Below, in pieces: positions 19,271-59,238 of a stretch of DNA of 64,000 nucleotides (within the stretch, counting starts at the first letter, position 1; every line of letters begins with the position of its first letter). Source of the stretch: Takakia lepidozioides (Eukaryota > Plantae > Bryophyta); NCBI GenBank assembly GCA_030704615.1, contig CM060734.1, positions 53,754,001 to 53,818,000 on the forward strand, in the 5' to 3' direction. The translations under genes were made by a program, and so were the position numbers. The notes beneath the pieces were generated by a model that saw only the letters and a program-made list of their open reading frames with translations, ran no database searches and had not been told where the DNA came from.

Positions 19271-20641
19271 TTGATTGTCCCGTAGTTAGCACATAAAGGC
19301 TATGAAGGCACATAAAGGCCCTTATATACCCTGATTAGATATATCCTTCATTTTAACATATACCCTTCAGGAAAGTAGGGTATATTGAGGGTCTTGATGC
19401 AGGTAAATATAAGGATAAGGGTATATCATAAAAATACACCCTGATATAAGGGTATATATCCGGGTACCTAAACTTGCCACACCAGGGTATATATATATCA
19501 ATATACCCTGATATACCCAGCGGGTATATCAGGGTAATTCATATGCCCGCCCAACACTGGTAATCCCCTCCACTGGGAGGCTTATACCCTACACGTATAT
19601 TACTATTCTTATGACAAATATTTTGAGAGAGAGATGCTGACTCAACCCTTGGCGATATGTTCATCCATAAGCTACAGAATTCATCCCAAATTCTCGCACC
19701 TCACCTGCAGGATCATTCATCCAGTATGCGAGGCCTTACATGCCGGCATGCTGCCACGTGGCCTCCGTGGATTCCCTGTGAGTCGAGATCAAATATAAAT
19801 ATAAGCGGGAGCGCCTCGAAGGAAGGGCAGCAGCAACTTGTCTTGGTGACCCATTCAACTTTTGGCCACTTGCTACCTAACGGTTGGTCAAACCCATTGC
19901 CCAGATTACCTTACATTTCAGTCACGTGGAAGCTCTTGAGGGTACTCTCTAACCTTTGTTCAGCAATTTCCTGCGAGCAATGTTGAAAATGTGATTATGC
20001 ACCTTAGGACCAATGTATCCGTCCATCTATCGTACATCCATTAGAAAGCGCATCCATCCACAGCTGCCTGCCTATAACAAGCGGAGTGTGAATGGAGCGC
20101 CAAGTTATCCCCGCGTCTTCATCTTCTTCCTCTCTCTTCGTCGCTGCGTGCAAGGCCGGGGACACATCAACACATCTGCGTACGATCTAGTACCTAAGAC
20201 TGCCAGTTCCAGATTCCTCAAGTGATTTTCTGTCGTATCTTAGCTGTGGTCCTCATGGACATTCTAGATCGAGAAAAATGAGAGAAGTACAGCTAATTGA
20301 ACTGCAATTCTTGGTCTTGAATGAGGTAGTAGGGAAAGCTTCAGTAAAGAGGAGTTAAGATACAGGAGTTCCATGGCACCGTGGCCCTCGCCTTGCTCCC
20401 TCTTTGTCCTGACTAGAAATGCCGACCGTTTCTTCAGCGCATGCAGTGACCGCCTTAGGACGTATTTACGTGTACGGAGATTACTGGTCAGAACGAGGTT
20501 AGATGAGCTACTTGGCTCGGTAGGGAAGTCAGGAAGCGGCGGATTCGTAGTCAATATAAAAGCCGGTGCAGCAATTTTAGGCACATTAGGTGTAGCTTTG
20601 ATAGTAACGAGTGCTGTATACATTGGAGTGTTCTGCCAAGA

Positions 20642-22703
20642 AATGTTAGAGATGCAGTGGATTGAGCTCCAAATCCGCGATCTTAGGACCAGTCACAGAA
20701 TAAGATTGAGAGGAGAAATCAGCAGTAAGGCCAGAGATGATGGTCTGGTGCCGATGCGGATTCGAGAGGGGAGACTGGGTAACGGAGACCATTTCACTTT
20801 GTTACTGTTCGCAAATATAGTCCTGATCTTTGTGAGCTGCATGGCTATCGTGGTTGTTTGGCTAGGAGAAGGGGGTTCTGCGTGGAGCGTCTCACGTATT
20901 TGCGCCAAACTAAGAATTCATACGCCAAAAGGGCCACGGGGATGGCCAGTGCTTGGTAGCTGGATGGAGATGCGAAGCAATATCCCGCACAGGAAGCTGG
21001 CAACGCTGGCTAGGCAGCACGGAACCTCTACACATAGGTTGATGTCTCTGAGTGTTGGATGCACACGCATCGTAGTGACCTCAGATCCCACCATAGCTAA
21101 GGACATTCTCCGAAGTGCAGCGTTTGCTGAGCGGCCACTAAAACAAGCAGCAATGCATCTCCATTTTTCTCGGGCAATGGGATTTGCGGTCCAAGGACCC
21201 TACTGGCTGCGCCTGCGGCAGATAGCGTCTTCTCATCTGTTCTCTCCCAAGCAAATAACTGTCCACCATGTTGCTCTCCAGCGCGAAACCTCACGCATGC
21301 TTCTGTCCGTTGCTCAAGCCTGCGACCTACATCACACACTGGCTACGGATTCTACTGTAATCGCTCGAAATGAGATTTGTCTGCGGCCATACCTGCAGCG
21401 TGCAGCTGTTAACAACATTATGAGCCTTGTTTTTGGGAGGCACTATGAATTTGATAAATCCTGTAAAGAAGCGGAGGAGTTGGAGGCCATGATTCGCGAA
21501 GGGTTTGAGGTGCTAGGTGCCTTTAACTGGGCCGACCACTTGCCTGTTTTGTGCCATCTTCAATTCCTCCCCTTCTCCATGCGCTGCACAAAGTTGATGG
21601 TGAAGGTGGAATCTTTTGTACTATCGAGAATCAATGAACATCGTTGCCGCGACCGCAGTTCAAATACTGCTAAGCCAGCTCCTGACTTTGTGGACGTGCT
21701 ACTCTCACTTGACGACGAATACAAGCTATCTGATTCAGACATGACCTCAGTACTTTGGGTAAATCTTCATTATTTTCTGTTATCTATTTATGTGTGTGTG
21801 TCGAACCTTCGTCTCTGTCTGCATTTCAATCCAACGCATGCATAGAGCATATATCCACATGTTACAAAACGAACTGAATCTATGTGACTCAATGAATAGT
21901 AGAATCATCGTAGAGAGAGCGACTCGGACCATTATGGTTGTAGCACGTAACATTTTGCAGTCTACGGTTTCGAATACTGTAGCAATATATGTCTGTACTG
22001 CCAGTGATGGTGCCAACACATTTCATGTTTAAACATCAGAAAGCTGATGCAGTGTACGTGAGACTGTAATGTCCAGGAGATGTTATTTAGGGGCACAGAC
22101 ACCATAGCTGTTCTCACAGAGTGGGCCCTTGCCGAGGTGATTTTACGTCCGGAGATACAGAAGAGGATCCAGGAAGAATTAGATGAGGTGGTGGGAATGG
22201 ACCGAATAGTGGAGGTCAAAGATATTGCACGATTGCCATACCTCCAAGCTTTTCTAACAGAAACCTTACGTTGCCATCCACCCGGACCTCTACTTTCCTG
22301 GGCACGCCTGGCGACTGAGAATGTGAAGCTGGGAGGATACGATATTCCCAAGGGCACCACCGCCATGGTCAATATGTGGGCCATCACTCATGACCCTTCT
22401 ATATGGAGGGATCCTGATGTATTCAATCCCTCTCGGTTTCTGGAGAAGGAGGGAGGTTTATATATTGACGTTAGGGGGGCAGATTTGCGCTTGGCTCCCT
22501 TTGGTTCGGGAAGGCGCGTATGTCCTGGTCGAGCTTTAGGCATAGCCACTTCAGAGCTCTGGCTAGCTCGGTTGCTCCACCACTTTTCATGGTCAGCAGC
22601 ACCTGACCATCCCGTGGATCTTACAGAAGACCTCAAGCTGTCGTGTGAAATGGCTTCTCCTTTGCACGCAACTCCCACCCGTCGACTCTGGAGTCCGATT
22701 TGA
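20642..22703 (+). CDS. CYP78A: Cytochrome P450, CYP78A (KLUH-like) family; exon 1 ends at 21758, exon 2 is 22077-22703; start codon uncertain (frame open from 20373)
   Basis: [34 protein letters not shown]|EMLFRGTDT (CYP78 I-helix with a single intron), [28 protein letters not shown] heme motif. Confidence 0.93.
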
Positions 22704-23679: not shown

Positions 23680-24361
23680 TCAGATGCCAAAAAGCATACC
23701 GGGTCTAGTTTCAAATGTTGTGTCTCGGGTGAGAAATCCCAGTGCTTGCTCATAAACTCCCTCTTCTTTGTTGGGGAAGTGTGCAGTGCGGCTGCTAATG
23801 ACTTGCAACAGTTTTGTCTGTGGCTCCAGCAGCATTGTGATGGCCTTGGACACAAGACTGGCATTTGTGACTGCTGGTGGAGGAGGCCTCATTATGTCTC
23901 GCAGACGTGCACTCATCTGCACCAATCACAACCATGAGAGAACACCCTAGATACACCCTCAGCTGTTGTAGTGGTAAAGCAGTCCCTCTGAAGGTAATGA
24001 ATGTGGGGGCGTGGGGGGGAGCGAGAGAGAATGTACTCATAAGATGTTGTTTGCCGTAGCCTTGTGGGCACAGACCCTGCGCCCAGTTTGGGCGGAACAA
24101 AGGGGACCAGAAACTACCTTTGTGAGGGGCTCACTCCGGTAGTCTGGCTTACCTTGGTATAGAAAATTAGTTCGGCTTTCCAGATATCCTCTAGGTAGCC
24201 CTTCAAGCAAGCATCAATCTGCTGTGTGTGAGCAGCCCAAAAGTTAGACCCAACAAGCCAGGGCTTTGGGCTCAGCCTCAAGATTTTGAGAGTTGGTGAA
24301 CAGAGGTGCCGGGACAATGTTCTTGATTGTCCTGAAGAGGGTCACTCTCTGGTGTGCGCGC

Positions 24362-24399
<38 letters not shown>

Positions 24400-25664
24400 A
24401 TGGTTAGTGGTGTGGTCATACCAGGGCTACTACAGATCCCATGAGAACTCTAAAGTTAAGCATTTTTTGCCCGGAATAGTACTGGGATGGTGACCTCCGG
24501 GGAAGTCCCGCTGCTGCACCCCCACTACTGTATCAGAACTTTTGTTCCACTCAAACTGGGCGCGGGGTCAATGGCCACAAGGCTACGGCAAAACGTCTTA
24601 TGAGAGAGAGAGAGAGAGAGATTGTACTCATAAGACGTTGTTTGCCGTAGCCTTGTGGCCATTGACCCCGCACCCAGTTTGAGCGGGAACAAAAGGGACA
24701 GAACCTACCTCTGTCAGGGGCTGACGTTGGTAGTAAGACTTACCTCCATATATAGAATTAATCCGGGTTTTCCAGATATCCTCTAGAAATCCCTTCACAC
24801 AAGCATCAATCTGCTGTGTGTGATTTGCCCAAAAACTAGGCCTCAGGAGGGCCTGGGCTTTTGGCTCAGCTTCGAGACTTTCAAAGTTGGTAAACAGGGG
24901 TACAGGCACAATACCCTTAATAGATTTGAAGAGAGCGTCTCTTTGGTGAGAGAACCCCGGACAGTGTATCAGAAAATGAATACTGTCTTCAGATTGCCCA
25001 CACAACGGGCAATTGCACTCTCCCTTTCCTCTCTGCTTCTGTTTGCTGTTCAAAGGTAGGCTTCCTGCCCTGAGTTTAAATTTCAGTCTAGTGCCGAGAG
25101 TGGGTAGACCCTTGGGGTCATCCAAGATGTCCTCCCCCATGTCACAGACTGGAAACAAGTTCAGGGAAGTTTTCTGCCTAACTTCATTTTCATCAGACAA
25201 TCTCATGGCAACACACATGGCTGAGGACACTACAGCCTCTAAGTCAGATTTATCCAGCAGGGTCAAGACTTGCGGATCCAGGTCCAGGTCCTTGAGGATC
25301 TCTTCTACTCTCTTCTGCCAGGACTTAGCCTGTTTGACAGGGCGGTCCTGTTTCCAAGATATAGAGTTGATTAACTTAGGATATCTGGTGTTGGGCATAT
25401 GTTGCAGCTGACCCCACCATCTGACCTTGAATTCATCTCGTCGGGAGCTTAAGGACGGAATGCCAAACTCACCCTGAACAGCCACATTGGCTGTTTTGGA
25501 GCATGCTGACATACACTCCTTAAGCACCCCCACTTGAATGGATTCTAGAGACTTAGCCTGGTTGGAGTTATCAACCCATATAGCAGATCCGTACTCCAAG
25601 GCAGGTCTAATAACGCGACAAAGCATGGTTTTCTTAACCTCAGAGTTGACCCCTCTGCAGTGGA

Positions 25665-45943: not shown

Positions 45944-46737
45944 GACAAATCTTCCCCACTCTCTCTTGAGAGTGACATGGCATTGAAGGAGTGTAAACTC
46001 TAGTCGGGGTTACACTGGGTTACACGACAAGGTGTGTAACTCCACGTGGGGTTACATTGGGTTACACAATGAGGTGTGTAACTCCGCTCGTTACCCAATG
46101 CGTTGGAACCCAACCCAATGAGCATAATGAGCATAATGATATAACCCAATGATATAATGAGCATATCAATGAGCATCAATAAACCCAATGCTCCTAACCC
46201 ACCAACCCCCTAATTACGTCTTCACACAAGGACAAAAGTGGATAGTAAATATGGAGTCCACGGATCCAGCTTGTTGCACATCCCCATCTCTGTAGGCAGT
46301 GCCACTCTGAGTTTCTAGGATTACCAGTAGGCGTCACTGAGCCATATAATATAAGCGTGTATCCATTCTCAGTAATATAATATCGTGTACCCATCGTCTC
46401 CTTGCTCCGAGCAGGCATTTAGGGATAGTTAAATATAATCAATAATTTGGGTCAGAGTTGAAGTTGTTTCAAATTGAGACAGCATGCAGCTCATAATTTG
46501 TACACTGTTCATGCTTGGTTGCATGAAACTCTAGACTTGATAATTACTCGAGCAAGACCAGGTCACAGAGTATTCCATATTTATCCATGTCATCTATCAA
46601 AGCTTCACATGAAATTCCACACATACTTCATGTCAAGGCGACCAGCCTGCTTCCGAGCAAGAGATTTACGTAAATTATTGAGTGAGAGATATCCACTCTC
46701 TCTTATGTTGGCAGCAACTATACGATTAGAAGCCCTG

Positions 46738-48545
46738 AAGTGTAAAAGACATTTTTCCAACTTGGCATATAGTCTTCTTTTTCTTAATTTATCAAGGACA
46801 AGGCGTACATGGCGGTCATGTTCTTCTTCATTCTGTGAAAATATCAAAATGTCGTCCAAATAGATGACTACAAAGTCATCTAAAAATTCTTGAAAAATGT
46901 CATTCATCATATGTTGGAAAATTGCTGGAGCATAAGACCAAAAGGCATAACACTGTATTCAAAATGTCCATACCTTGTTCAAAAAGTTGTTTTATATTCG
47001 TCTCCTTCTTTTATCCGTACAAGGTTATAAGCTCATTTCAAGTCAATTTTGGTGAAAATCTTCGATCGTCCCAGCTGGTCGAGAAGCCCAGAAATCAGTG
47101 GCAGGCGAAGTTGTTTGCTTCGCACCCACTGTGAGTATACTGAGAGGCGGCTCACCCTAGTGTTGTGGCCTAAATCTCGCAGGAGAGCATTCCACCTCAA
47201 CCGGAGTGCTCAACTGACCCGAATACTTTAGTTTGGGGTTGTCAGACATCGCATTGCAGGGGCTTGTCATTAGGGTTTTTTTTTTAAAAATGTGAGAGGT
47301 CTACGGTTTAGCCTGAAATTGCCCGCATCCTTGTCTTTTGGGTTTACGAGTTTTTCTACATTCCCAGTGTTGGGATTGCATTGCTAAGTACACAGAATGA
47401 TGATTGTGAGGCGACGCATGTCTCCACACTATCATGGCGCACCATGAAGAGAGCGGGATTGGTTAATTTCTTCATGGGGTGAGGATTGCAGGCTTCTTGC
47501 TCCAAAACCAAAGCGTGCTTGCCGTCGACCTCCACTACCCACGGGACCACCCAGACGCAGTGGAAGGCTAGAAACAATGGCCGACGAGGCACGACAGTAT
47601 GTAGACGAAGACGAGGAGGAGGATTTGTTGTGTGTCCCTGCGGGCGAGCCCCCGCAGATGATTTTGAATGTCGGATGAAGTGCTTCAACAAATTTTCATC
47701 AATATATTCACGTAATGCAGCCAACTCCGTCTAGAATAAGTTATAAATTGGGCTGAATGGTGGTTGGGCTCCTTCTTATAACTCAATTGCATAGTCATAA
47801 GTCGATGTTCTGGCAATATGTCTCAACATCATTGTAATCTTGATATTGAGCGGGTAATGTTGAAATACCTTTGTCTGTTATGTCTTGATCGGAGTCGCAT
47901 AAAGTGCAAATGTCGCATCCTTTTTGGTAGCTCTCATGAAAGCTCTAGCTCCAAGGAACACGGGTTGAATACCTTTGATATTTCTACATTTTTGTCTTGC
48001 AGAAATTTTTCGCGATCGCCAGTCGATGTCAGGATTATGAAGTACGAACCAGGGAAGTCCAAGGATCACAGGATTCGTTGGAGACTAGATTACGTTGAAA
48101 ACAATATGTGATGCTTGATCTTTAAGCTTCACTTCAAGTGATCGAGTTTCATGGTCCACATTTCCTGATACTAACGGTCGTCCATCGATGACTTCAACGG
48201 GGGCCGTTAGTTTCTTCTTTACGAGCGTTAAATTGTGTTGCTTCGCAAAGTTTTTGTCCATAAAACAAACTGAAGCGTCTAAGTCCAAAAGTTTTTCTAC
48301 AGAGATATCTCGATTTTGCACTCTAATTTTTACCGGAACTGTGAAAAAATGTGTAGGGTCTGGAGGTAGAAAGAGACATTTTTTTTTGAGGAATTTGTGG
48401 TGTCCATCCGCATGGTCCCTACTACGACTAGACATCTTCGTTTTTCGACCTCCTCGTATCGGACACTTGAGTTGCGCCCCGAGCTTTGAATCTTCTCTTG
48501 TTGGGGCAGTTTAATGCTATGTGATCTTCTTCTCCGCAATAGAGG
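46738..48545 (-). mobile_element. Ty3/gypsy chromovirus (Tcn1-like), 5' pol part: protease + RT up to KCLLH; degraded
   Basis: LLDLDASVCFMD (protease), [54 protein letters not shown]...LYAKLEKC. Confidence 0.9.
47101..47640. other. ~540-bp CpG-rich insertion interrupting the gypsy RT
   Basis: RT motifs SKSSAGA (47641+) and LISGLLDQL (<=47100) flank non-RT sequence that replaces the expected intervening RT segment. Terminal hairpin gcgaag-ttgtttg-cttcgc at 47105-47123. Confidence 0.55.
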
Positions 48546-49438: not shown

Positions 49439-51020
49439 GAAAGATATCATAGTGCACTCCTGATTGTGGTGTGGATATTGGAGCTCCTTGGAAGCTCACA
49501 AGCCAACACGGCGCTCCCCCAACTACGGCGTCCCTGCCAATTAACACGGTGCTCCCCCCAACTACGGACTAGGTAGCATTCATGCTGAGACAGGCTACAG
49601 GATGTAGTCTGTCGAAACATGAACGCTACCTGACGTTATTGAATTTGACGACGATGTGAGCCGGTTACTATGTCGGTCATGAAATGCCAGCTTCACTCTG
49701 TCACGCTCAATCATCCACGAAGGCATACATAAGGTCATAGTCATCCACATTAGACTATATGATAAGCATCCATGAAGCCAGGTAAAATGTCATAGTCATC
49801 CTCAATGTATTCGTTCCCTTCACAAATAGGTAATGGACTACGGCAGGTGACACGGCTGCTGAGAACTAATGAAAATGGAACACGTCGGCAAACAACGTCC
49901 TAAACTCAATTACGGCGTCCGTGCCAAACACGGTGTTCCCCAACTACGGCGTCCTTGCCAATTAACACGGTGCTTCCCAACTACGGCGTCCCTGCTAATT
50001 AACAGGATGCTCCCCCAACTACGGTGTCCGTGCCAAACACGGTGCTCCCCCAACATGACGTCCATGCCAAACACAGTGCTCCCCAACTACGGCGTCCCTG
50101 CCAATTAACACGGTGCTCCCCAACTACGACGTCCCTGCCAATTAACACGGTGCTCCCCAACTACGGCGTCCCTGCTAATTGACACGATACTCCCCCAACT
50201 ACGGTGTCCGTGCCAAACACAGTGCTCCCCCAACACGACGTCCATGCCAATTAACACGGTGCTCCCCAACTACGGCGTCCCTGCTAATTAACACGATGCT
50301 CCCCAACTACGGCGTCCCTGCCAATTAACATGGTACTCCCCAACTACAGCGTCCCTGCTAATTAACACGATGCTCCCCCAACTATGGTGTCCATTCCAAA
50401 CACGGTGCTCCCCCACTACGCCGTCCCTGCCAATTAACACGGTGCTCCCCAACTACGGCGTCCCTGCTAATTAACACGGTGCTCCCCCAACTACTGTGTC
50501 TGTGCCAAACACGGTGCTCCCCAACTACAGCGTCCTTTCCAATTAATACAGTGCTCCCCCAACATGACGTCCATGCCAAACACGGTGCTCCCCTTGCCAA
50601 TTAACGGTGCCCCCCCTTCCCCCAACTACGGCGTCCCTGCCAAACACGTTGCTCCCTCAACACGACGTCCCTGCCAATTAACATGGTGCTCCCAGCTCGA
50701 TTCGACGTCCCTGCCAAATACGGTGCTCCCTCGACACCACACTGTGGAAAGATATCACAGTGCATTCCTGATTGTGGTGTGGATGATTGGAGCTCCTTGG
50801 AAGCTCGCAAGCTAACATGGCATTCTCCCAACTACGGCGTCCCTGCCAAACACGGTGCTCCCCCGACACCACGTCCCAGCACACCGTGGAAAGACATATA
50901 TCATAGTGCAGTCCTGATTGTGGTATGGATGTTGGAGCTCCTTGGAAGCTTGCAAGCCAATCACACGAATAGCGCCACACAACGTCCCCATCAACACGAT
51001 GTCCCAGAGCACACGACGTC
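49439..51020. repeat. GC-rich minisatellite (33-38-bp units, cacggtgctccccaactacggcgtccctgccaa[tta]a; ~25 copies, main block 49905-50735) with a ~75-bp companion repeat at 49439, 50747 and 50890
   Basis: Direct reading of the sequence. Confidence 0.92.
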
Positions 51021-51092: not shown

Positions 51093-53265
51093 ACATCAAT
51101 CTGAGGTCGAATTTCTGGGCTACATTATTTCCGACAAATGCGTCTTTATGGATCAGAAGAAATACAAACCATCATCAAGTGGATTAAACCTACTTCGGTC
51201 CGAGATGTACAATGTTTTCTGGGATTTGCAAATTTCTATAGAATCTTCATCAATGACTACTCCAAAATTGTTGCACCAGTGACACGACTCACATGGAAGG
51301 ACAAATTTGTATGGGACGACATGCAGACCCATCTAAACCATTCTTCTTGGAAGCAGATGCATCGGACTTTGCACTTGGCGCTATACTCTCTCAATACGGT
51401 ACGAATGACCAACTTCACCCTGTTGGTTTTCGTTCTCGCAAATTTTCTGCTGTAGAGATCAATTATAAAATCCATGATAAAGAACTTCTAGCGATCATCG
51501 ATGCTTTTGAGGAGTGGCGTCATTTACTGGAGGGAGCTAAACATCAGGTCACTATCTACACCGATCACAAAAACCTCGAATATTTTGTGAGTGCTCGTGT
51601 TTTGAATCGATGTCAAGCCAGATGGGATATGTGACTAGCAAGGTTTAATTTTGTTATTGCCTATCGCCCCGGACATCCTCAAGGGAAACCCGATGTTCTT
51701 TCTCGACGATCATTTCTTGCGCCGAAAAAGGAGGAGACAGCTTTCGACCAATAGAAATCCATCATCTTGAAACCAACAAATCTCCAATTGAATATGCTAT
51801 CTATGTCCACCTATGACGATGCAGAGATCATAAAGGAGATTTAGGAAGCACTGAAGAGCGACCAATTTGCTACGACACTACGAAGTCAACTAAATTGACC
51901 TCGAGACAACCCACATGTTACAAACGACTTCAAATTCAAAAATGACTTACTTTATTTCAAGGGACTTCTCTATGTACCTCCAGGACCTACACGATTTCGA
52001 ATTCTTCAAACATATCATGATCTTCCGGTTGCATGACATTTCGGCTTCAACAAAACAATGGAATTGATATCCAGAGACTATTGGTGGCCGCAGATGTGGA
52101 AACTCGTAAAAGAATTTATAAAATCTTGCGACACGTGTGCTAGAGCGAAGGGACCACGACATTGACCTTACGGCCTTCTTCAACCATTACCATTCCCAAG
52201 GGTCCATGGTCGTCCGTGTCTATGGACTTTATTACGGACATTCCAATTTCCAAGACCACCGATTCAATCCTTGTTATTGTAGATCGTTTTACAAAGATGA
52301 CACATTTCATTCCATGTAATAAAACGGTTATCGACGAGGAAACTGGAGGACTCTTCCTCAATAATATCTACCGCATTCATGGACTCACAAAGGACATCGT
52401 ATCTGATCGAGGACCATAGTTCATATCAAATTTCTAGAGGGGATTATTTCACATATTAGATACTAAGATCAATCTCTCTACAGCTAATCATCCACAAACT
52501 GATGGTCAACCCGAACGTGTAAACCAGATTTTGGAACAGTATCTTCGGTGTACGATAAATTATCACCAAGATAATTGGACGGACCTTCTGTCATTGGCTG
52601 AGTTTGCCTACAACAACACTATACATTCTTCGATTAAACAAACTTCATTTTTCTCCAATTATGGTCATCATCCTCGAGCAAACCATTTCCACATGAAGAC
52701 TGTTGGAAGCCCTGCTGTAGAAAACCTTGCTACTCATCTTGTTACAATTCACAAGAAGCTTACATTCCACCTCGCAGAAGCTAAAAAACAATACAAGGAG
52801 TATGCAGATCAACATCGTCAATTCCAACCTCAGTTCAAGGTCGGAGATTGTATGTGGCTTCAAACCTCGCGTTCATCAAAGAAGTTGGATTATCAACGTC
52901 TGGGACCATTCAAAATTATTCGACAAATAAATCCGGTCAGTTTTCGGCTTGAACTCCCACGAAGTATGCGCATCCATCCAGTCTTTTATGTTTCATTATT
53001 GGAGTTGTATCATCCATCGAATATTCCAAGGAGAGTCTCCGTACCACCTCCACCAATCGAAGTCAATCAGGAAATTGAGAATGAAGTCGACAAAGTCCTA
53101 AACTCTCGCATCAAGTATAAACGTCTTGAGTATTTCGTACATTAGAAAGGCTACGACATCAGCGAACGAACGTGGGAACCTTCATCCAACCTCGTCAATG
53201 CATCTAACAAAGTCCAAGAGTTTCATCAACGATATCCAGCTAAGCCCCGAGTTACACGTCAATAA
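51093..53265 (+). mobile_element. Ty3/gypsy chromovirus (Tcn1-like), 3' pol part: RT end, RNase H, integrase, chromodomain; degraded
   Basis: [106 protein letters not shown]. Confidence 0.93.
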
Positions 53266-53830
53266 GCCGTCACAACGATGATGTCAATCAAGTTAGCTTC
53301 AAGGTGAAGACTCCACATTCAATGTACCTGATACACGCTAAGGAGAGAGGAGCACCACACATCAGTATATATAGCTACACTTCCAGCACTCTTGCATCTC
53401 GTATTTGCAGCATGAAGTTACATGAACCAAATACATTGGAGTTGTCGCTTACCCAACATCACGCTGACGCTCTCGAGACGATGGGTCACAAATGCGACGC
53501 GTACTTCCTTGTCTGGCCCCCGTACGACGACAAGTGGAGCGTACTTGAAGTCTGATAATTCTATTGGAGGTTGTGGGTTCGGACCCAGAGAGCAACGAAA
53601 TCATGTTTGAAGGCATCTTCAAAAATCAGAATGCTCAAATCACTGCGTGGTCCCTAGTTTAAGGTGTTGGACACTATCGATGGTTGTAGGGACCTATAAA
53701 CCATTTGAGTCAAGAACGAAGAGCCGAATACTTGGCAAGTACCATTCGCCGGATTTTGGATTTTCTCCAACTCTAAGCAAGTCCAAGATTTTACCGCTCC
53801 TCGAGGAACTCGGCGTTAGAGGAGGGGTGA

Positions 53831-54497
53831 TATCACGGAGATAGTCCAGAGGAACTTACCAGAAGTAAATACCAGAAGTAAATACGAGAAGTTACCAAGT
53901 TACCATGTTACCGGAAGTTACCATGTTACCGGAAGTTACCATGACTTATCGTGATTTATCGTGATCTTCCATGATTTACCATTAGTTACCAAATTACCGG
54001 AGTTTATCAAATTACCAAGAGTAACTTGGGAAACTGCTCAGGAAGCTTCTTTTGGAGAAAACTTCTCCATCAAGATACCTCCTTTGTTTAATGAAGCTTT
54101 TCCATCAATAAACCTTTGTTTAATCTTGGAAATTTCTTTATTAAGAAACCTCTATAGGGGAAGCTTCTTAGGGAGTAGCCAATATATATAGGAGACTGGA
54201 CACTCTTCAGTCTCGCCAACATAAGTTCAATCTACTCTTGTTTCAGTTCCAGTACTCCAGTCCAGCTTCTAGTACTCTAGTCCAGTTTCCAAGTATCTGG
54301 TACCCAGGTCCAGTTTCCAGCCTTCCAGTATTCGAGTTGAGTTCCAGTATCTTGTACTCTTGTCCATTGTTATAAAGATCATCTTGATTCATGTTTACCC
54401 ACCATGCGTTCGGCCACGCCGACCTTGACTTTTTGTCTAGTCTTGTATCTCTAGTCTGATCTCTTGTTTATGTTCAGTCATGTTCTCGTCCTTGACA
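53831..54497 (+). mobile_element. 3' LTR of the chromovirus
   Basis: PPT agaggaggggtga immediately upstream. Termini T(A)TCACGG...TTGACA. Internal gttacc repeats and a TATA-like tatatata. Confidence 0.75.
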
Positions 54498-56438
54498 CCT
54501 ACTACAAAAGCGCGTCAGGCCAGTCCAGTTAGCCATCACCAACACCATCCTGTGGTTGTTCGCAACAAAGGCAACGCCGATAGTACATAATCATCCCGGT
54601 CTAGAAAGCATGACTGACGACGAACTGTGGAGATTGTAAGTTTGCCCCCGAATCCTGCTTGTTTTCTTTCGCGGGGAGGGGGAGAGAATGAGGGGTACTA
54701 GAGGATGAAGCAGCGGTCATCACGTGTATGCCGCACGTGCGGAACGACGATAGGTCACTCGTGTTCCCGTCGTTGTCGTGTCCATTGATGACATATGTCC
54801 CAAGTTCGTGTTTATTTCGTTTTACTAATTATGGATTGTGTTGGGGAGGAACAGCTTTTTCAAAATCGACCGGAAGTTTGAACGACCTGGAAGAAGAGTC
54901 AAGTTTCAGAATTTTATAATCACTGAGGGGGTTGCGGTCAGTGTGCTGTCGGGCTCGCCCCGACGCCAACCTACAGTCACAGCCAGAGTAGGACAACTAC
55001 TTGATTCGCCATGTTTGTTTTTTATTGCCTTTAGTGATCGGGCGTACCGGCTCGTGACGCAAATGCGGGTGAACTTGTTGGACGACCAGCATCGTCTTAT
55101 TATGTGCAAAGTCAAGGGCCATGTGCGGGAAGGCGATATCCCCACCCTCCTTGAACCCGAAAGCGAGGCTCATCGCTTTAGATGAGTTATTTATGTGACG
55201 TTTCCATGAATCGAAATCGGTTTTAGCTGAAGGTTAGAAACACGGCAACATGATCTGTTGGGGTCGATGTCTACAACAGAATGGTTTATGACCGTATATA
55301 CCCCCTGCAAATATGTGTGGTCGAGTGCCTCCAGGCGCCTCAACCTTGTTTTAGTGAAAGATCCCATTTAAGGCGTTGGATACCCGAGAGCTTCTCTTTT
55401 GTTCGGGAAATGTATTGAAATAAAAGCTTAATATTGTTTTTGAGGTAGTTTGATTGGGAGTGGACATGCATGTCGTCTCTTCAGTTGAGGGAAAAACCAT
55501 CTTGTAGATTGACGTGTTTTTAAACGGACGTTGGTCTTGTTTTTTCGCAGGTGAAAGGACACGAGAAAAAAGAGATGCCCAAACCGACTCCGCACACCCA
55601 TGTGCCATTGCCTAAACGAGTCGTGTCCATCGACCCGGGCCGAAAATACCTCTACACAGGAGTGGTGTACTCGCCCAAAGTAGAGGCCGCGCTGAACGAG
55701 CCGTGGGTGGACCAAGGGGACCGGTTCCAAGTGATCCGCTGCAACAAGGCACGGTTCTACACCATGTGTGGGTACCGGCGGCGGGCCAAGCTGACGAAGA
55801 GGTGGATGGCCAGGAACGAAGCCGTGACGCAGTTCAATTCGAGGGTCAACACCGTCTCCGCTAAGGTGGCGACTGTAGAGGGGTATAGCATGTACGCAGC
55901 GTCGGTGCTGACACATCTCCGAGCACTGAACGAGTTCTACATGGTGAACAAGAGGATGAGGGAGCTGAGGTGGGCGACATGGATAAAGACGGAACGGGCC
56001 TATGTGACGCTTGCAAGGGAGGTGACGGCGAACAACCCGACGACGGTGGTGGCCTTCGGGGACGCCTCTTTCGCGCACAACAGCCCCGGGACGGAGAGCA
56101 CACCAACCTCCAAGCTACAGAAGAAGATACGGGAGAAGGCAAACGAGATGGTGATGGTGGGCGAGTTTCGAACTAGCCAACTATGTTGCGGTTGTAGCGA
56201 AAGGATGGAGGCCATGCCCCAGTGCTGATTCCCGGGACAGACTGGGCGTCGCGGTTCATACGCGGTCCGACTGTGTCCCAACACAGCCTGCTATCGGACT
56301 ACATGGAACCGAGATGTCAACGCGACGGTCAACATCATGCACCGGTTCTTGGAAATGTGGGACTTCCGGCCTCGCCACCCGGCATTCTGCAGGGCGGAGA
56401 GGCCGGAGAGGGATGTTGCCAGCCGCACATCTCATTAA
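54498..56438 (+). pseudogene. Fanzor (eukaryotic TnpB-family RNA-guided endonuclease), 5'-truncated by the LTR; exons <=54498-54635, 54855-54987, 55551-56438; one in-frame TGA at 56226-56228
   Basis: Spliced: ...[14 protein letters not shown]...[16 protein letters not shown]...-RVVSIDPGRKYL (RuvC-I D)...VVAFGDASF...PT...VGEFRTSQLCCGC (RuvC-II E + Zn)...*...VRLCPNTAC..TWNRDVNATVNI (Zn + RuvC-III D). GT-AG introns join in frame. Confidence 0.88.
55035..55185 (+). pseudogene. RPS28: 40S ribosomal protein S28 fragment inside Fanzor intron 2
   Basis: [50 protein letters not shown]. The N-terminus is missing and there is a small frameshifting deletion. Confidence 0.85.
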
Positions 56439-56532
56439 GACTGCCATAGTAACAGGCAGTCCGCGCTGAGCGGGTGAGGGTGCAAACCCTCTCCGCGATT
56501 ATGCACAACGGTGGGTTTTTATACTCACATTG
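56439..56532 (+). ncRNA. Putative Fanzor omegaRNA scaffold / element right end
   Basis: Three stem-loops directly after the stop: GACTGCC/GGCAGTC (56439-56461), GCGG..GAGGGT-GCAA-ACCCTC..CCGC (56470-56496), GTGGGT/ACTCAC (56511-56528). GC content drops after this. Confidence 0.6.
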
Positions 56533-56561
56533 AATGTACGATGGAGGCCCTTGAAATGAAC

Positions 56562-56655
56562 GTTGTTTACAGTGGAAGGAAACTGGTGCATTTTGTTGAA
56601 AAATGTATCTTACCAAAAGAGTCATGTTGTTTCCAGTGGAAGGAAACTGGTGCAT
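56562..56655. repeat. 30-bp direct repeat x2 with a 34-bp spacer
   Basis: gttgttt(a/c)cagtggaaggaaactggtgcat at 56562-56591 and 56626-56655. Confidence 0.9.
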
Positions 56656-56906
56656 CTTTCAAAATCTCGAGGCTGAGCCCAAAGCCATGGCCCAGTTGGG
56701 ATCTAATTGCTAGGCAGACCACAAGCAGATGCTCATGTCAAGGGCTTCTAGAGGAAGTATGGAATCTCGAACAAGATTGTCAGTGTCACGGTAAGCCCCA
56801 CTACTGGAGTAGGCCCCTCACAAAGGTAGTGTCTGTTCCCTTTTGTTGTGCCCAAGCTGCACAGAGTCTATGGCCACAAGGCTACGGTAAAGAACATCTT
56901 ATGAGT
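56656..56906 (+). mobile_element. RTE-X-like LINE 3' fragment abutting the p44 pseudogene end
   Basis: ctcgaggctgagccc...ggccacaaggctacggtaaagaacatcttatgagta. Confidence 0.8.
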
Positions 56907-59238
56907 AAGGTTGAGATCTTGATGTAGAGATACTTTCACAACCAGGACAGTTATGGAGGCTCTCATGAATGTAAAGGTCACATTCAAAGCAGAAGTGCTG
57001 CCTGCAGCTTGGACACATGAGCCGCACCCTGCTTACCCTGCCCCCTGTCATACAAACAAAACAGCAGATTGATGAGCATCCTGTGCAGAAAAAAATGATA
57101 AATGCCAGAGAGAGACAACTTGTGAAAGAGGTACCTGTGAAAGGGAGTTCCTGCTGGCAGCCATAACAGAGAAGGGCTATGCTTTGCTTCCCATTTGCCT
57201 CCGCCAAATTACCAAACTCCTCAAATGGGGGCACTGGAAAAAGATGGTGATAAGAGCGTGCCAAGTGGGGAGATGAAACCAATGTCAGCCCACATAGGTG
57301 ACACTCAGTGGGAAGGTCACATACACGAGCTTTGCAATGAGGGCAGGTGTAACCTCCCCTATCGTCACTTCTCTGTGCAAGCACAGAGTGCCACTGCATC
57401 TTCTGCACCCCTTTGTGGAAAGCCCATTCGTACTAGGCTCGCTATAGGTGTCTCTGCCAGTGCATGCTCCATTATCAGGTGGGGCATGCTCCATTATAAG
57501 GTCTTTCACGTGGGCCTGTATGAGAGCACATGTTGTGCTTAGTGTATGTGACCAAGAGAAGTGGGCGAAGTAAGAGCTATGAGCTCCCCAAGAAATCAAA
57601 GGCTCCAAGTAATGAATGTATCAACTGCACTGGACTCCATTGCACAGAATTCAACAATGAGAACTACAAGGGAACACTGAAGTAAGATTTGAGGAGGTAT
57701 TAGTTCCACCATACAATGGAGGTCAGATTCTACTTGGACAAGGGTCTGCAATACCAATGATGCACTCAAAACTTGCCAATGAAGTAAAAATGCTGATACT
57801 GTAGCCCACATTCTTTCTTACATGGTGATGAGAAAGAGAGGCTAGCACCCACAAACCTCGCTTGTTGCAACGGAATAAATCCCGCTCGTTCATTCACATA
57901 AAAGTTTACAAATGTAAACTTCAGCAGCCAGCCTACAACAGAACATCGGATATTAGCCTCCTTGCACTTCTGGATTGCCTCCATGAGGTCTCCAGGGTCA
58001 CAGGTGCCAAGTGCTGAAAAGATGAGCACCATCTCCCGGTGCCCATATGTGGGTATTTGAGACAAAAACCCTCTGGCCAAGTCAAGTGCATTCTGTATCG
58101 AAACATCCCCTGTGCGCGGGCCTCCTATTTTGACCTCGATATGTGTGTGAAAGGTACAAGTCACATCCACAGGAAGCCTGAACGGCCAATAGGAGCAGAG
58201 AGGAAGAGATCATAGAGCAGAGGAACTTTTGGAGACGGAAGAGAACTTACAGGACTTGTAAGTGGGTGGAGTTGACAGATGGCATTGGTCCATATAACTG
58301 GTTGTCAAAGAGAATCCTGTTCCATACAAAATAGGCACAAAATATAGGTCAAAAAGGAATAAAAATCAAATCTTCTGGAATTACAACAATCTTTCCTTCT
58401 TTTTTATTTTTGTGAGAAAATGGGGAAACGCCCCAGAATCAACATTGTCGCTCGAGACCATCGATTGCAATCAACTCGCGCTCAAAGGCCTCAACACAGT
58501 TGGCCACGATTCCCATGCGGCTGGGCCGAAAGTCCGTCTCCGCAGCCGCCTGGGCAGGCATCCCACGGTCCCCAGTTTAGAATGAGGCCTTCATCTTTGC
58601 ATACCAATTCTAGGGCTGGGGTTTAAGGACCCTCTTTTGTAGCTAAATGCTACTATCAAATGTACAGGAATCTTACTGGGAATGAAAGCATATCTAAGGT
58701 CACCGAGAATATTAGAAGAGAGGGGCCAACAAGCCCTTGCGGTGTCCTTTCACCGAACATAGGCTTGCGTACTCGAACCAAGGGGAATCCAAGCAGGGTA
58801 GGGGCTTTTCTCAACGCATAATGTGAGAGCGCCCATCCTCTGCCACCTACGACTCTCGCGGTCATAATGGTGCCTCGAGTAGATTGGATGCGGGGTAATC
58901 TGAACAACACACTCTCTTTTCTGGCTAAATACAAAGAAAAACTTGAAGTGAAGTTTGCGGGATCAACTCACTCGGGAGAGATCGACGAGAAGGTAGAGGT
59001 AACGGATAATGCCGCGCTGGATGTGAGGGCCAGCCATGGCTGCAACCTTCTTTCGATGCTGGCGCTGCTGCTGTACAACATCCACAGGTCGCAACAATCC
59101 AGACTCATCCTCTTGAAGAACCTCCCAAGACCGATCGTCCGCGTACGCTCGCTCCCAAGCCTCCATGTCCCGCCCGGCTTCCTCAGCGTCCACATCTCCA
59201 TCATCTTCCACACCGTATGCCACATTTTTCTCCCCCAT
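56899..59238 (-). pseudogene. GTF2H2: TFIIH p44/SSL1 subunit, intron-containing pseudogene
   Basis: AWERAYADDRSWEVLQEDESGLL...IQRGIIRYLYLLVDLSR; GDVSIQNALDLA..IPTYGHRE; GYTCPHCKARVCDLPTEC..CGLTLVSSPHLARSYHHLFP; FCFECDLYIHESLHNCPGC. Frameshifts at ~57930, ~57470 and ~57360-57385; the central vWA exons are not seen. Confidence 0.85.

Follow-up and report, generated by a model that had tools for sequence, protein, structure and literature searches.

The window analysed here, 64,000 nucleotides of Takakia lepidozioides DNA (contig CM060734.1, positions 53,754,001 to 53,818,000), carries at 54498-56438 on its forward strand what is in all likelihood a non-functional relic of a gene for Fanzor1, the eukaryotic and viral relative of TnpB. 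The relic belongs to a described family (Bao and Jurka 2013; Saito 2023; Jiang 2023), to which the locus adds a dead member in an unusual host. The interest of the locus lies in what it implies for siblings and for viral spread rather than in the copy itself. An earlier note on this DNA had proposed an intron-containing Fanzor gene at this place. HMM searches with the separate pieces of the gene and a structure search with one of them returned Fanzor1.

The assignment rests primarily on a reference profile of 644 positions, which was built from 22 full-length relatives with the window sequence excluded. Each relic piece was searched separately, and the stop-to-stop fragments of the window were compared with the same profile. 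Four pieces were found to be colinear on it (Table 1). Among the 2174 six-frame fragments, E values below 5 were obtained for three, namely exon 3a, exon 3b and exon 2. Since no other fragment of the window matched a profile to which the window had not contributed, the match goes far beyond what chance would give.

The third exon forms a frame of 295 codons (55551-56435) including a single TGA, and the three RuvC motifs, the VVAFGD motif and both cysteine pairs were found exactly where the earlier note had placed them. Its two upstream exons, joined in frame through GT-AG gaps, were also borne out, as profile positions abut across both gaps. The translation of exon 1 (54499-54635) ends with ELWR, the final Trp of which is the Trp of the family W...F motif, and it shares 43% identity over 30 aa with the nearest relative, P0151, a protein of a giant-virus-like contig discussed below. 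The start of this exon had been located correctly but its frame runs from 54499, not from 54498; the codon 54496-54498 straddles the end of the adjacent long terminal repeat (LTR) and follows a TGA at 54493-54495. Exon 1 ends with TT, and the C that opens exon 2 completes a Phe codon across intron 1. Profile position 323, the only one missing between exons 1 and 2, is this split codon. Exon 2 (BLASTP against P0151: E 4e-04, 53% identity over 17 aa) encodes ITEGVAVSV and thus has TEG in place of the TDG that had been named as canonical and is indeed present in 20 of the 22 relatives. The TACTAAT element of intron 1 lies about 25 nt before its AG, and the junction of exons 2 and 3 is in phase 0. 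Because the borders are exactly GT-AG, the phase is kept and no homologous residue is lost or gained, both gaps are predicted to behave, probably, as spliceosomal introns. No second copy of either intron sequence was found within the window.

Two other gene models were considered and rejected. A third mini-intron excising the TGA would have to use the sole GT...AG span around this stop, which is 19 nt and too short. The antisense open reading frame (ORF) of 216 aa at 55428-56078 is a by-product of the GC-rich sense frame.

Table 1 Features of the Fanzor1 relic and its flanks (positions within the window)
Feature	Position	Strand	Remarks
Ty3/gypsy chromovirus pol remnant	51138-53262	+	RNase H, integrase SH3, chromodomain
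Candidate 3' LTR of the chromovirus	53282-54497	+	1216 bp; TGTCAA...TTGACA termini
Exon 1 remnant	54498-54635	+	Profile 280-322, colinear; reading frame from 54499
Probable intron 1	54636-54854	+	219 nt; GTAAGT donor, AG acceptor 54853-54854, branch-like TACTAAT
Exon 2	54855-54987	+	Profile 324-364; hmmsearch E 6.5e-05
Probable intron 2	54988-55550	+	563 nt; GT donor, long pyrimidine tract, AG 55549-55550
Exon 3a	55551-56225	+	225 codons; profile 377-581, E 1e-74
In-frame TGA	56226-56228	+	Splits the zinc ribbon, in a variable-length loop
Exon 3b	56229-56438	+	69 codons and TAA (56436-56438); profile 586-639 of 644, E 2e-16
Relic 3' flank	56439-56652	+	Two hairpins
Dispersed host repeat	56653-56907		About 255 bp; bounds the relic on the right
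TFIIH p44 (GTF2H2/SSL1), last long exon	56899-57408	-	Convergent with the relic; Pfam C1_4 1.6e-14

Searches with the 225-aa piece encoded by exon 3a led to the same family. phmmer against 1.84 billion representative proteins found 471 relatives, the best with E 6e-40 and 44% identity. The full-length relatives have 560-790 aa, and their alignment to the piece starts at residue 315-480. A Cas12f1-like TNB domain was detected in eight of the best relatives (E <= 3e-4), in seven of the eight above the Pfam cut-off. The piece itself matched only TNB in Pfam, under the cut-off (E 0.019; 15.6 bits against 26.3), and on its own it gave no match in NCBIfam and none in PDB by phmmer. A family profile made from the 22 full-length relatives and the window piece and searched against PDB detected the Fanzor1 structures SpuFz1 (8gkh, 5e-41), GtFz1 (2e-35) and PpFz1 (5e-30), followed by mimivirus Fanzor2 (2e-07) and TnpB/Cas12f (about 1e-3). 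The AlphaFold model of the piece (predicted local distance difference test, pLDDT, 87.3; predicted template modelling score, pTM, 0.79) has a RuvC fold with a helical insert. In the Foldseek search with this model, the first seven matches were all Fanzor1 structures (SpuFz, GtFz and PpFz), and Cas12f, TnpB and Fanzor2 came after them. Judged from sequence and predicted fold, the assignment to Fanzor1 is secure. A pattern search of IMG/VR gave 53 pattern matches, none of which was confirmed as a related locus.

Intact Fanzor1 reportedly associates with an omegaRNA, the transcript of the 3' end of the mobile element that encodes it, and then cuts double-stranded DNA with a single RuvC active site (Saito 2023; Jiang 2023). 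Three residues are described as making up this site: the Asp of RuvC-I, an alternative Glu and the Asp of RuvC-III. In the window copy, the RuvC-I residue is Asp28 in SIDPG (55632). Gly170 in VVAFGD (56058) occupies the old RuvC-II site and is invariant in 45 aligned sequences. The alternative Glu205, in GEFRTSQ (56163), follows 35 residues past Gly170; the residue before it is Asp in 20 of the 22 relatives and Gly in the window copy. The CxxC pair of the zinc ribbon (56184/56193) precedes the TGA, and the CxxxxC pair (56274/56289) and the RuvC-III Asp in WNRDVNA (56313) are downstream of it. As D28, G170, E205 and the RuvC-III Asp are all present, the layout matches the rearranged catalytic site of Fanzors, in which an alternative Glu replaces the RuvC-II Glu (Jiang et al., PMC10530073).

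The best solved relative is SpuFz1 of Spizellomyces punctatus (PDB 8gkh; also 9ceu-9cez), which the family profile matches over its own positions 12-636 and which Foldseek aligned to the window model with E 4e-08 and a template modelling (TM) score of 0.55-0.60. SpuFz1 and the window copy have the same order of motifs (I.TDG...SV, IDP, DE..TS..C..C, WNRD) at about 19% identity in the modelled part. However, SpuFz1 is complete and active with omegaRNA, whereas the window copy starts at profile position 280 and has a stop in the zinc ribbon. Bacterial TnpB (ISDra2, PDB 8h1j/8bf8) and Cas12f have the same core of RuvC and zinc ribbon (TNB) and are more distant, with fold E values of 7e-4 to 1e-2 in addition to the profile value given above. 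TnpB keeps the canonical RuvC-II Glu, in contrast to the window copy, which has the Gly at that site and the Glu downstream, as in Fanzors. Fanzor1 genes of the green lineage are CrFNuc of Chlamydomonas reinhardtii and KnFNuc of Klebsormidium nitens. Both resemble the relic in this respect but are algal, and they were compared by description only. CrFNuc contains introns, is present in several copies per genome and resides on Helitron2 elements (PMC10530073). The flanks of the relic showed no recognisable Helitron end.

Read from its sequence, the copy cannot work as an enzyme, because the N-terminal 43% of the protein is absent and a TGA lies inside the zinc ribbon. Profile positions 1-279 found no match in any frame of the whole 64-kb window. 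In the solved Fanzor1 structures, the corresponding part (WED/REC) is responsible for RNA and DNA recognition and holds the omegaRNA and the target. What remains of the gene corresponds to the C-terminal 57% of the family profile and includes all catalytic residues, and a product ending at the TGA would be without RuvC-III. The copy had been described earlier as recently inactivated. The recent date is upheld by the data below, but more than one mutation separates the copy from a working gene.

In the 383 codons of the four pieces, there is one stop and no frameshift. In a simulation allowing substitutions only, a mean of one new stop was reached at about 2-3% divergence, and the chance of at most one stop was 0.10 at 10% divergence and 0.02 at 15%; the count thus agrees with a neutral divergence of about 2-3%, and one above about 10-15% is unlikely. 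Conservation among the relatives reaches at least 85% in 33 columns, of which the window copy keeps 29; in the leave-one-out comparison, relatives keep 79-100%. The four departures are TDG to TEG, DEF to GEF, NAA to NAT and one Pro to His. Given this small amount of damage, the loss of constraint appears to be recent.

The relic abuts retrotransposon sequence on its left side. The chromovirus to which the earlier note had attributed the cut at the 5' end was confirmed by its chromodomain (Chromo 7.6e-07, 29.4 bits at a cut-off of 25.1), detected on the piece after an in-frame stop at 53143-53145 of this domain, as well as by RT_RNaseH (1e-33) and SH3_Tf2-1 (5e-16). The candidate LTR, which finishes at 54497, has short repeats in its interior and, near 54185, a TATA-like box. 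Fanzor1 homology begins at 54499, within two bases of the LTR end. We infer from the position of this junction alone that insertion of the LTR caused the truncation. The pol gene is itself damaged: the overlapping ORFs 51138-51455 and 51293-51634 point to a frameshift, and at about 51 kb the remnant is broken off by a 37-bp tandem array beside an inverted gypsy remnant.

On the right side, no inverted or direct terminal repeats frame the relic; its right end lies somewhere in 56439-56652, and the left end has been lost to the LTR. The 3' flank folds with a z-score of -2.3 on the forward and -2.4 on the reverse strand and matched no Rfam family. A 33-nt direct repeat occurs at 56562-56594 and 56626-56658. 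An omegaRNA scaffold or the end of the element would be looked for at this place, and the flank may possibly include an omegaRNA remnant. The dispersed repeat that follows has eight further matches, full or partial, with 70-90% identity at about five other places in the window.

Several observations weigh against a recently truncated Fanzor1 gene. The match of exon 1 is weak when taken alone (E = 2 against the profile). Neither a transposase nor terminal repeats nor a target duplication was identified for the carrying element. The window holds no second copy of the LTR, which is for that reason a candidate one, and the missing N-terminal part was not found upstream of it. Finally, the terminal branch of the window copy in the phylogenetic tree described below is long (1.33 versus 0.76 for its sister), which could reflect either a divergent lineage or decay beyond that estimated from the stop count.

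The base composition of the relic had been put forward as a hint of horizontal origin. Such a hint may be seen in GC and in GC at third codon positions (GC3), not in CpG. Exon 3 has a GC content of 0.584, the highest of the window (median 0.454), and the sliding maximum over 888 bp is 0.590 at 55601. Its GC3 is 0.74, as compared with 0.47-0.50 in the P450 and p44 exons of the window. Against a window median of 0.50, the observed/expected CpG ratio (CpG o/e) comes to 0.96 for exon 3 and 1.1-1.2 for the relic introns, but the adjacent retroelement pol reaches 0.94, so that CpG richness was ruled out as a mark of foreign origin. It marks young repeats in this window, and only the high GC and GC3 of the relic are distinctive. 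As a separate observation, CpG is strongly depleted in the p44 exon (0.17) and in the dispersed repeat (0.26) but not in the LTR remnants (0.94-1.05) or the Fanzor block (about 1.0). Such a pattern is the reverse of that usual in seed plants.

The nearest relatives of the relic, P0151 and P0001 (620 and 561 aa), are encoded on a giant-virus-like metagenome contig of 395 kb (ENA ERZ25067524). Identity to P0151 is 44% by phmmer and 42.7% by tblastn, with E values from 6e-40 to 6e-61. Both genes are intron-less single ORFs with the full N-terminal part and lie among viral core genes, their neighbours including Pox_VLTF3, D5 primase-helicase, PCNA and Bro-N; in contrast, the window copy is gapped and lies among plant repeats. 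The contig has a GC content of 0.565, and its Fanzor1 gene has a protein kinase gene on one side and a DUF5832 gene on the other. The members of the P0151 cluster (620, 561 and 73 aa) are all on this contig, which may mean that more than one copy is present there. Relative P0005 is found among densely packed unsplit ORFs including Evr1_Alr, and P0002 beside an Rpb1 subunit and an FCP1-like phosphatase. Thus, each of the three relatives found on a contig above 15 kb has a giant-virus-like neighbourhood. Eukaryotic relatives occur as well: one shows split ORFs, and another has a peptidase A4 gene as its neighbour, which we take as pointing to a fungus. The Atlas clusters of the relatives comprise Nucleocytoviricota, Zoopagomycota and Mucoromycota. 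In the maximum-likelihood tree, which comprises 45 RuvC regions, P0001 is the sister of the window piece, with moderate support (83/82).

It could be argued from these data that the relic is the direct leftover of an integrated giant virus (Nucleocytoviricota) rather than of a Fanzor-carrying cellular transposon. The viral neighbourhoods of the three relatives point in this direction, as does the sister position to P0001, which shares its 90%-identity cluster and its contig with P0151. The P0151 gene is also close to exon 3 in composition (GC/GC3/CpG o/e of 0.61/0.75/0.94 compared with 0.58/0.74/0.96), and giant-virus-like regions are present in a moss and a lycophyte (PMC4083422). However, the block is just 2 kb, there is no other virus-like gene within the window, and two intron-like gaps are present here as opposed to the single ORFs of the viral relatives. 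The viral relative is only about 42% identical, and its placement in the tree has a support under the strict threshold. A direct viral leftover is therefore unlikely, although it is the best placed of the alternatives. Taken by themselves, the affinity to P0151 and the composition would fit a giant-virus source without proving one.

A living, shortened host gene extending from the ATG at 54610 to the TGA and encoding a domesticated RuvC-like protein without nuclease activity is very improbable. The in-frame ATG in exon 1, the good splice signals and the little-decayed frame would be in accord with such a gene. Its product, however, would have neither the N-terminal recognition part nor the RuvC-III Asp and only half of the zinc ribbon. 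Past the TGA, the frame remains open for 69 codons with strong homology (E 2e-16), which is unexpected for an old true stop, and the homology starts at the LTR end and not at a promoter. In addition, a similarity search with the 225-aa piece in a collection of 5.8 billion proteins, which covers those of 124-394 aa and seemingly does not include the source genome, found no match and hence no near-identical protein.

Foreign contaminant DNA (fungal, protist or viral) mis-joined in the assembly is a similarly remote prospect: the outlying GC and GC3 of the block and the occurrence of its relatives in fungi and giant viruses could suggest it, but host repeats form both junctions (the LTR end two bases from the first homologous codon on the left, the recurring repeat on the right), which argues against such a join, and instead of an intact foreign gene the block holds a truncated pseudogene.

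The plant setting proposed in the earlier note agrees with the gene content of the window. Since a CYP78A-like P450 and a TFIIH p44 gene are present, the host of the relic is, by its genes, a land plant. The P450, of CYP78A type, has two exons (20373-22700), and its best named relatives, with 58-64% identity, are from conifers (Cryptomeria), Selaginella and angiosperms; the best unnamed matches reach 70-73%. The p44 exon falls in the Atlas cluster "General transcription factor IIH subunit 2". The final three codons of the p44 ORF, stop included, lie within the dispersed repeat; the annotated C-terminus may come from insertion of the repeat, or the real last exon may have another end. At 24408-24522, about 110 bp from another copy of this repeat (24034-24295), Rfam gave a full-length match to 5S rRNA (57.8 bits). 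The window also holds a copia reverse transcriptase. Further repeats precede the chromovirus. The array of units of about 37 bp at 49890-50900 has 16-19 copies that are 60-90% alike, with a GC content of 0.556 and a strong negative GC skew. A second gypsy-type element, on the reverse strand, is represented by reverse transcriptase and protease-like ORFs (46605-46910 and 48085-48435) in a nested or rearranged repeat cluster.

For the truncated Fanzor1 gene, which we consider the best description of the block, the following course of events can be proposed. The gene, GC-rich unlike the host genes, would have arrived on a mobile element or by a viral insertion. A chromovirus LTR retrotransposon, or a rearrangement at the LTR end, may then have removed the front of the gene, and the TGA stop may have arisen after this loss or before it. 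A short dispersed repeat would have landed about 215 bp downstream of the relic. Decay of the remaining frame amounts to a few percent at most, and the whole sequence of events is therefore likely to have been fairly recent.

A broader proposal, which must be regarded as tentative and rather less probable than not, is that this land plant holds a young, multi-copy, intron-bearing Fanzor1 family derived from a GC-rich giant-virus lineage, with at least one sibling intact.

To our knowledge, Fanzors are the only known eukaryotic RNA-guided DNA nucleases. According to the literature, they occur in fungi, protists, animals, green algae (Chlamydomonas, Klebsormidium) and giant viruses. In the literature on Fanzors together with land plants, bryophytes or Viridiplantae, no land-plant Fanzor was found described, and "Streptophyta" appeared only in a figure legend. 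A barely decayed relic among land-plant repeats shows that the family reached an embryophyte genome and was kept there until recently. The affinity and shared composition with a gene of a giant-virus-like contig provide one more case for the idea of large DNA viruses spreading Fanzors between eukaryotes, and the relic is in keeping with the giant-virus footprints known from non-seed plants. Practical value hinges on the existence of intact siblings. Should such a sibling exist, it would be the first native RNA-guided DNA endonuclease of a land plant, with its own omegaRNA.

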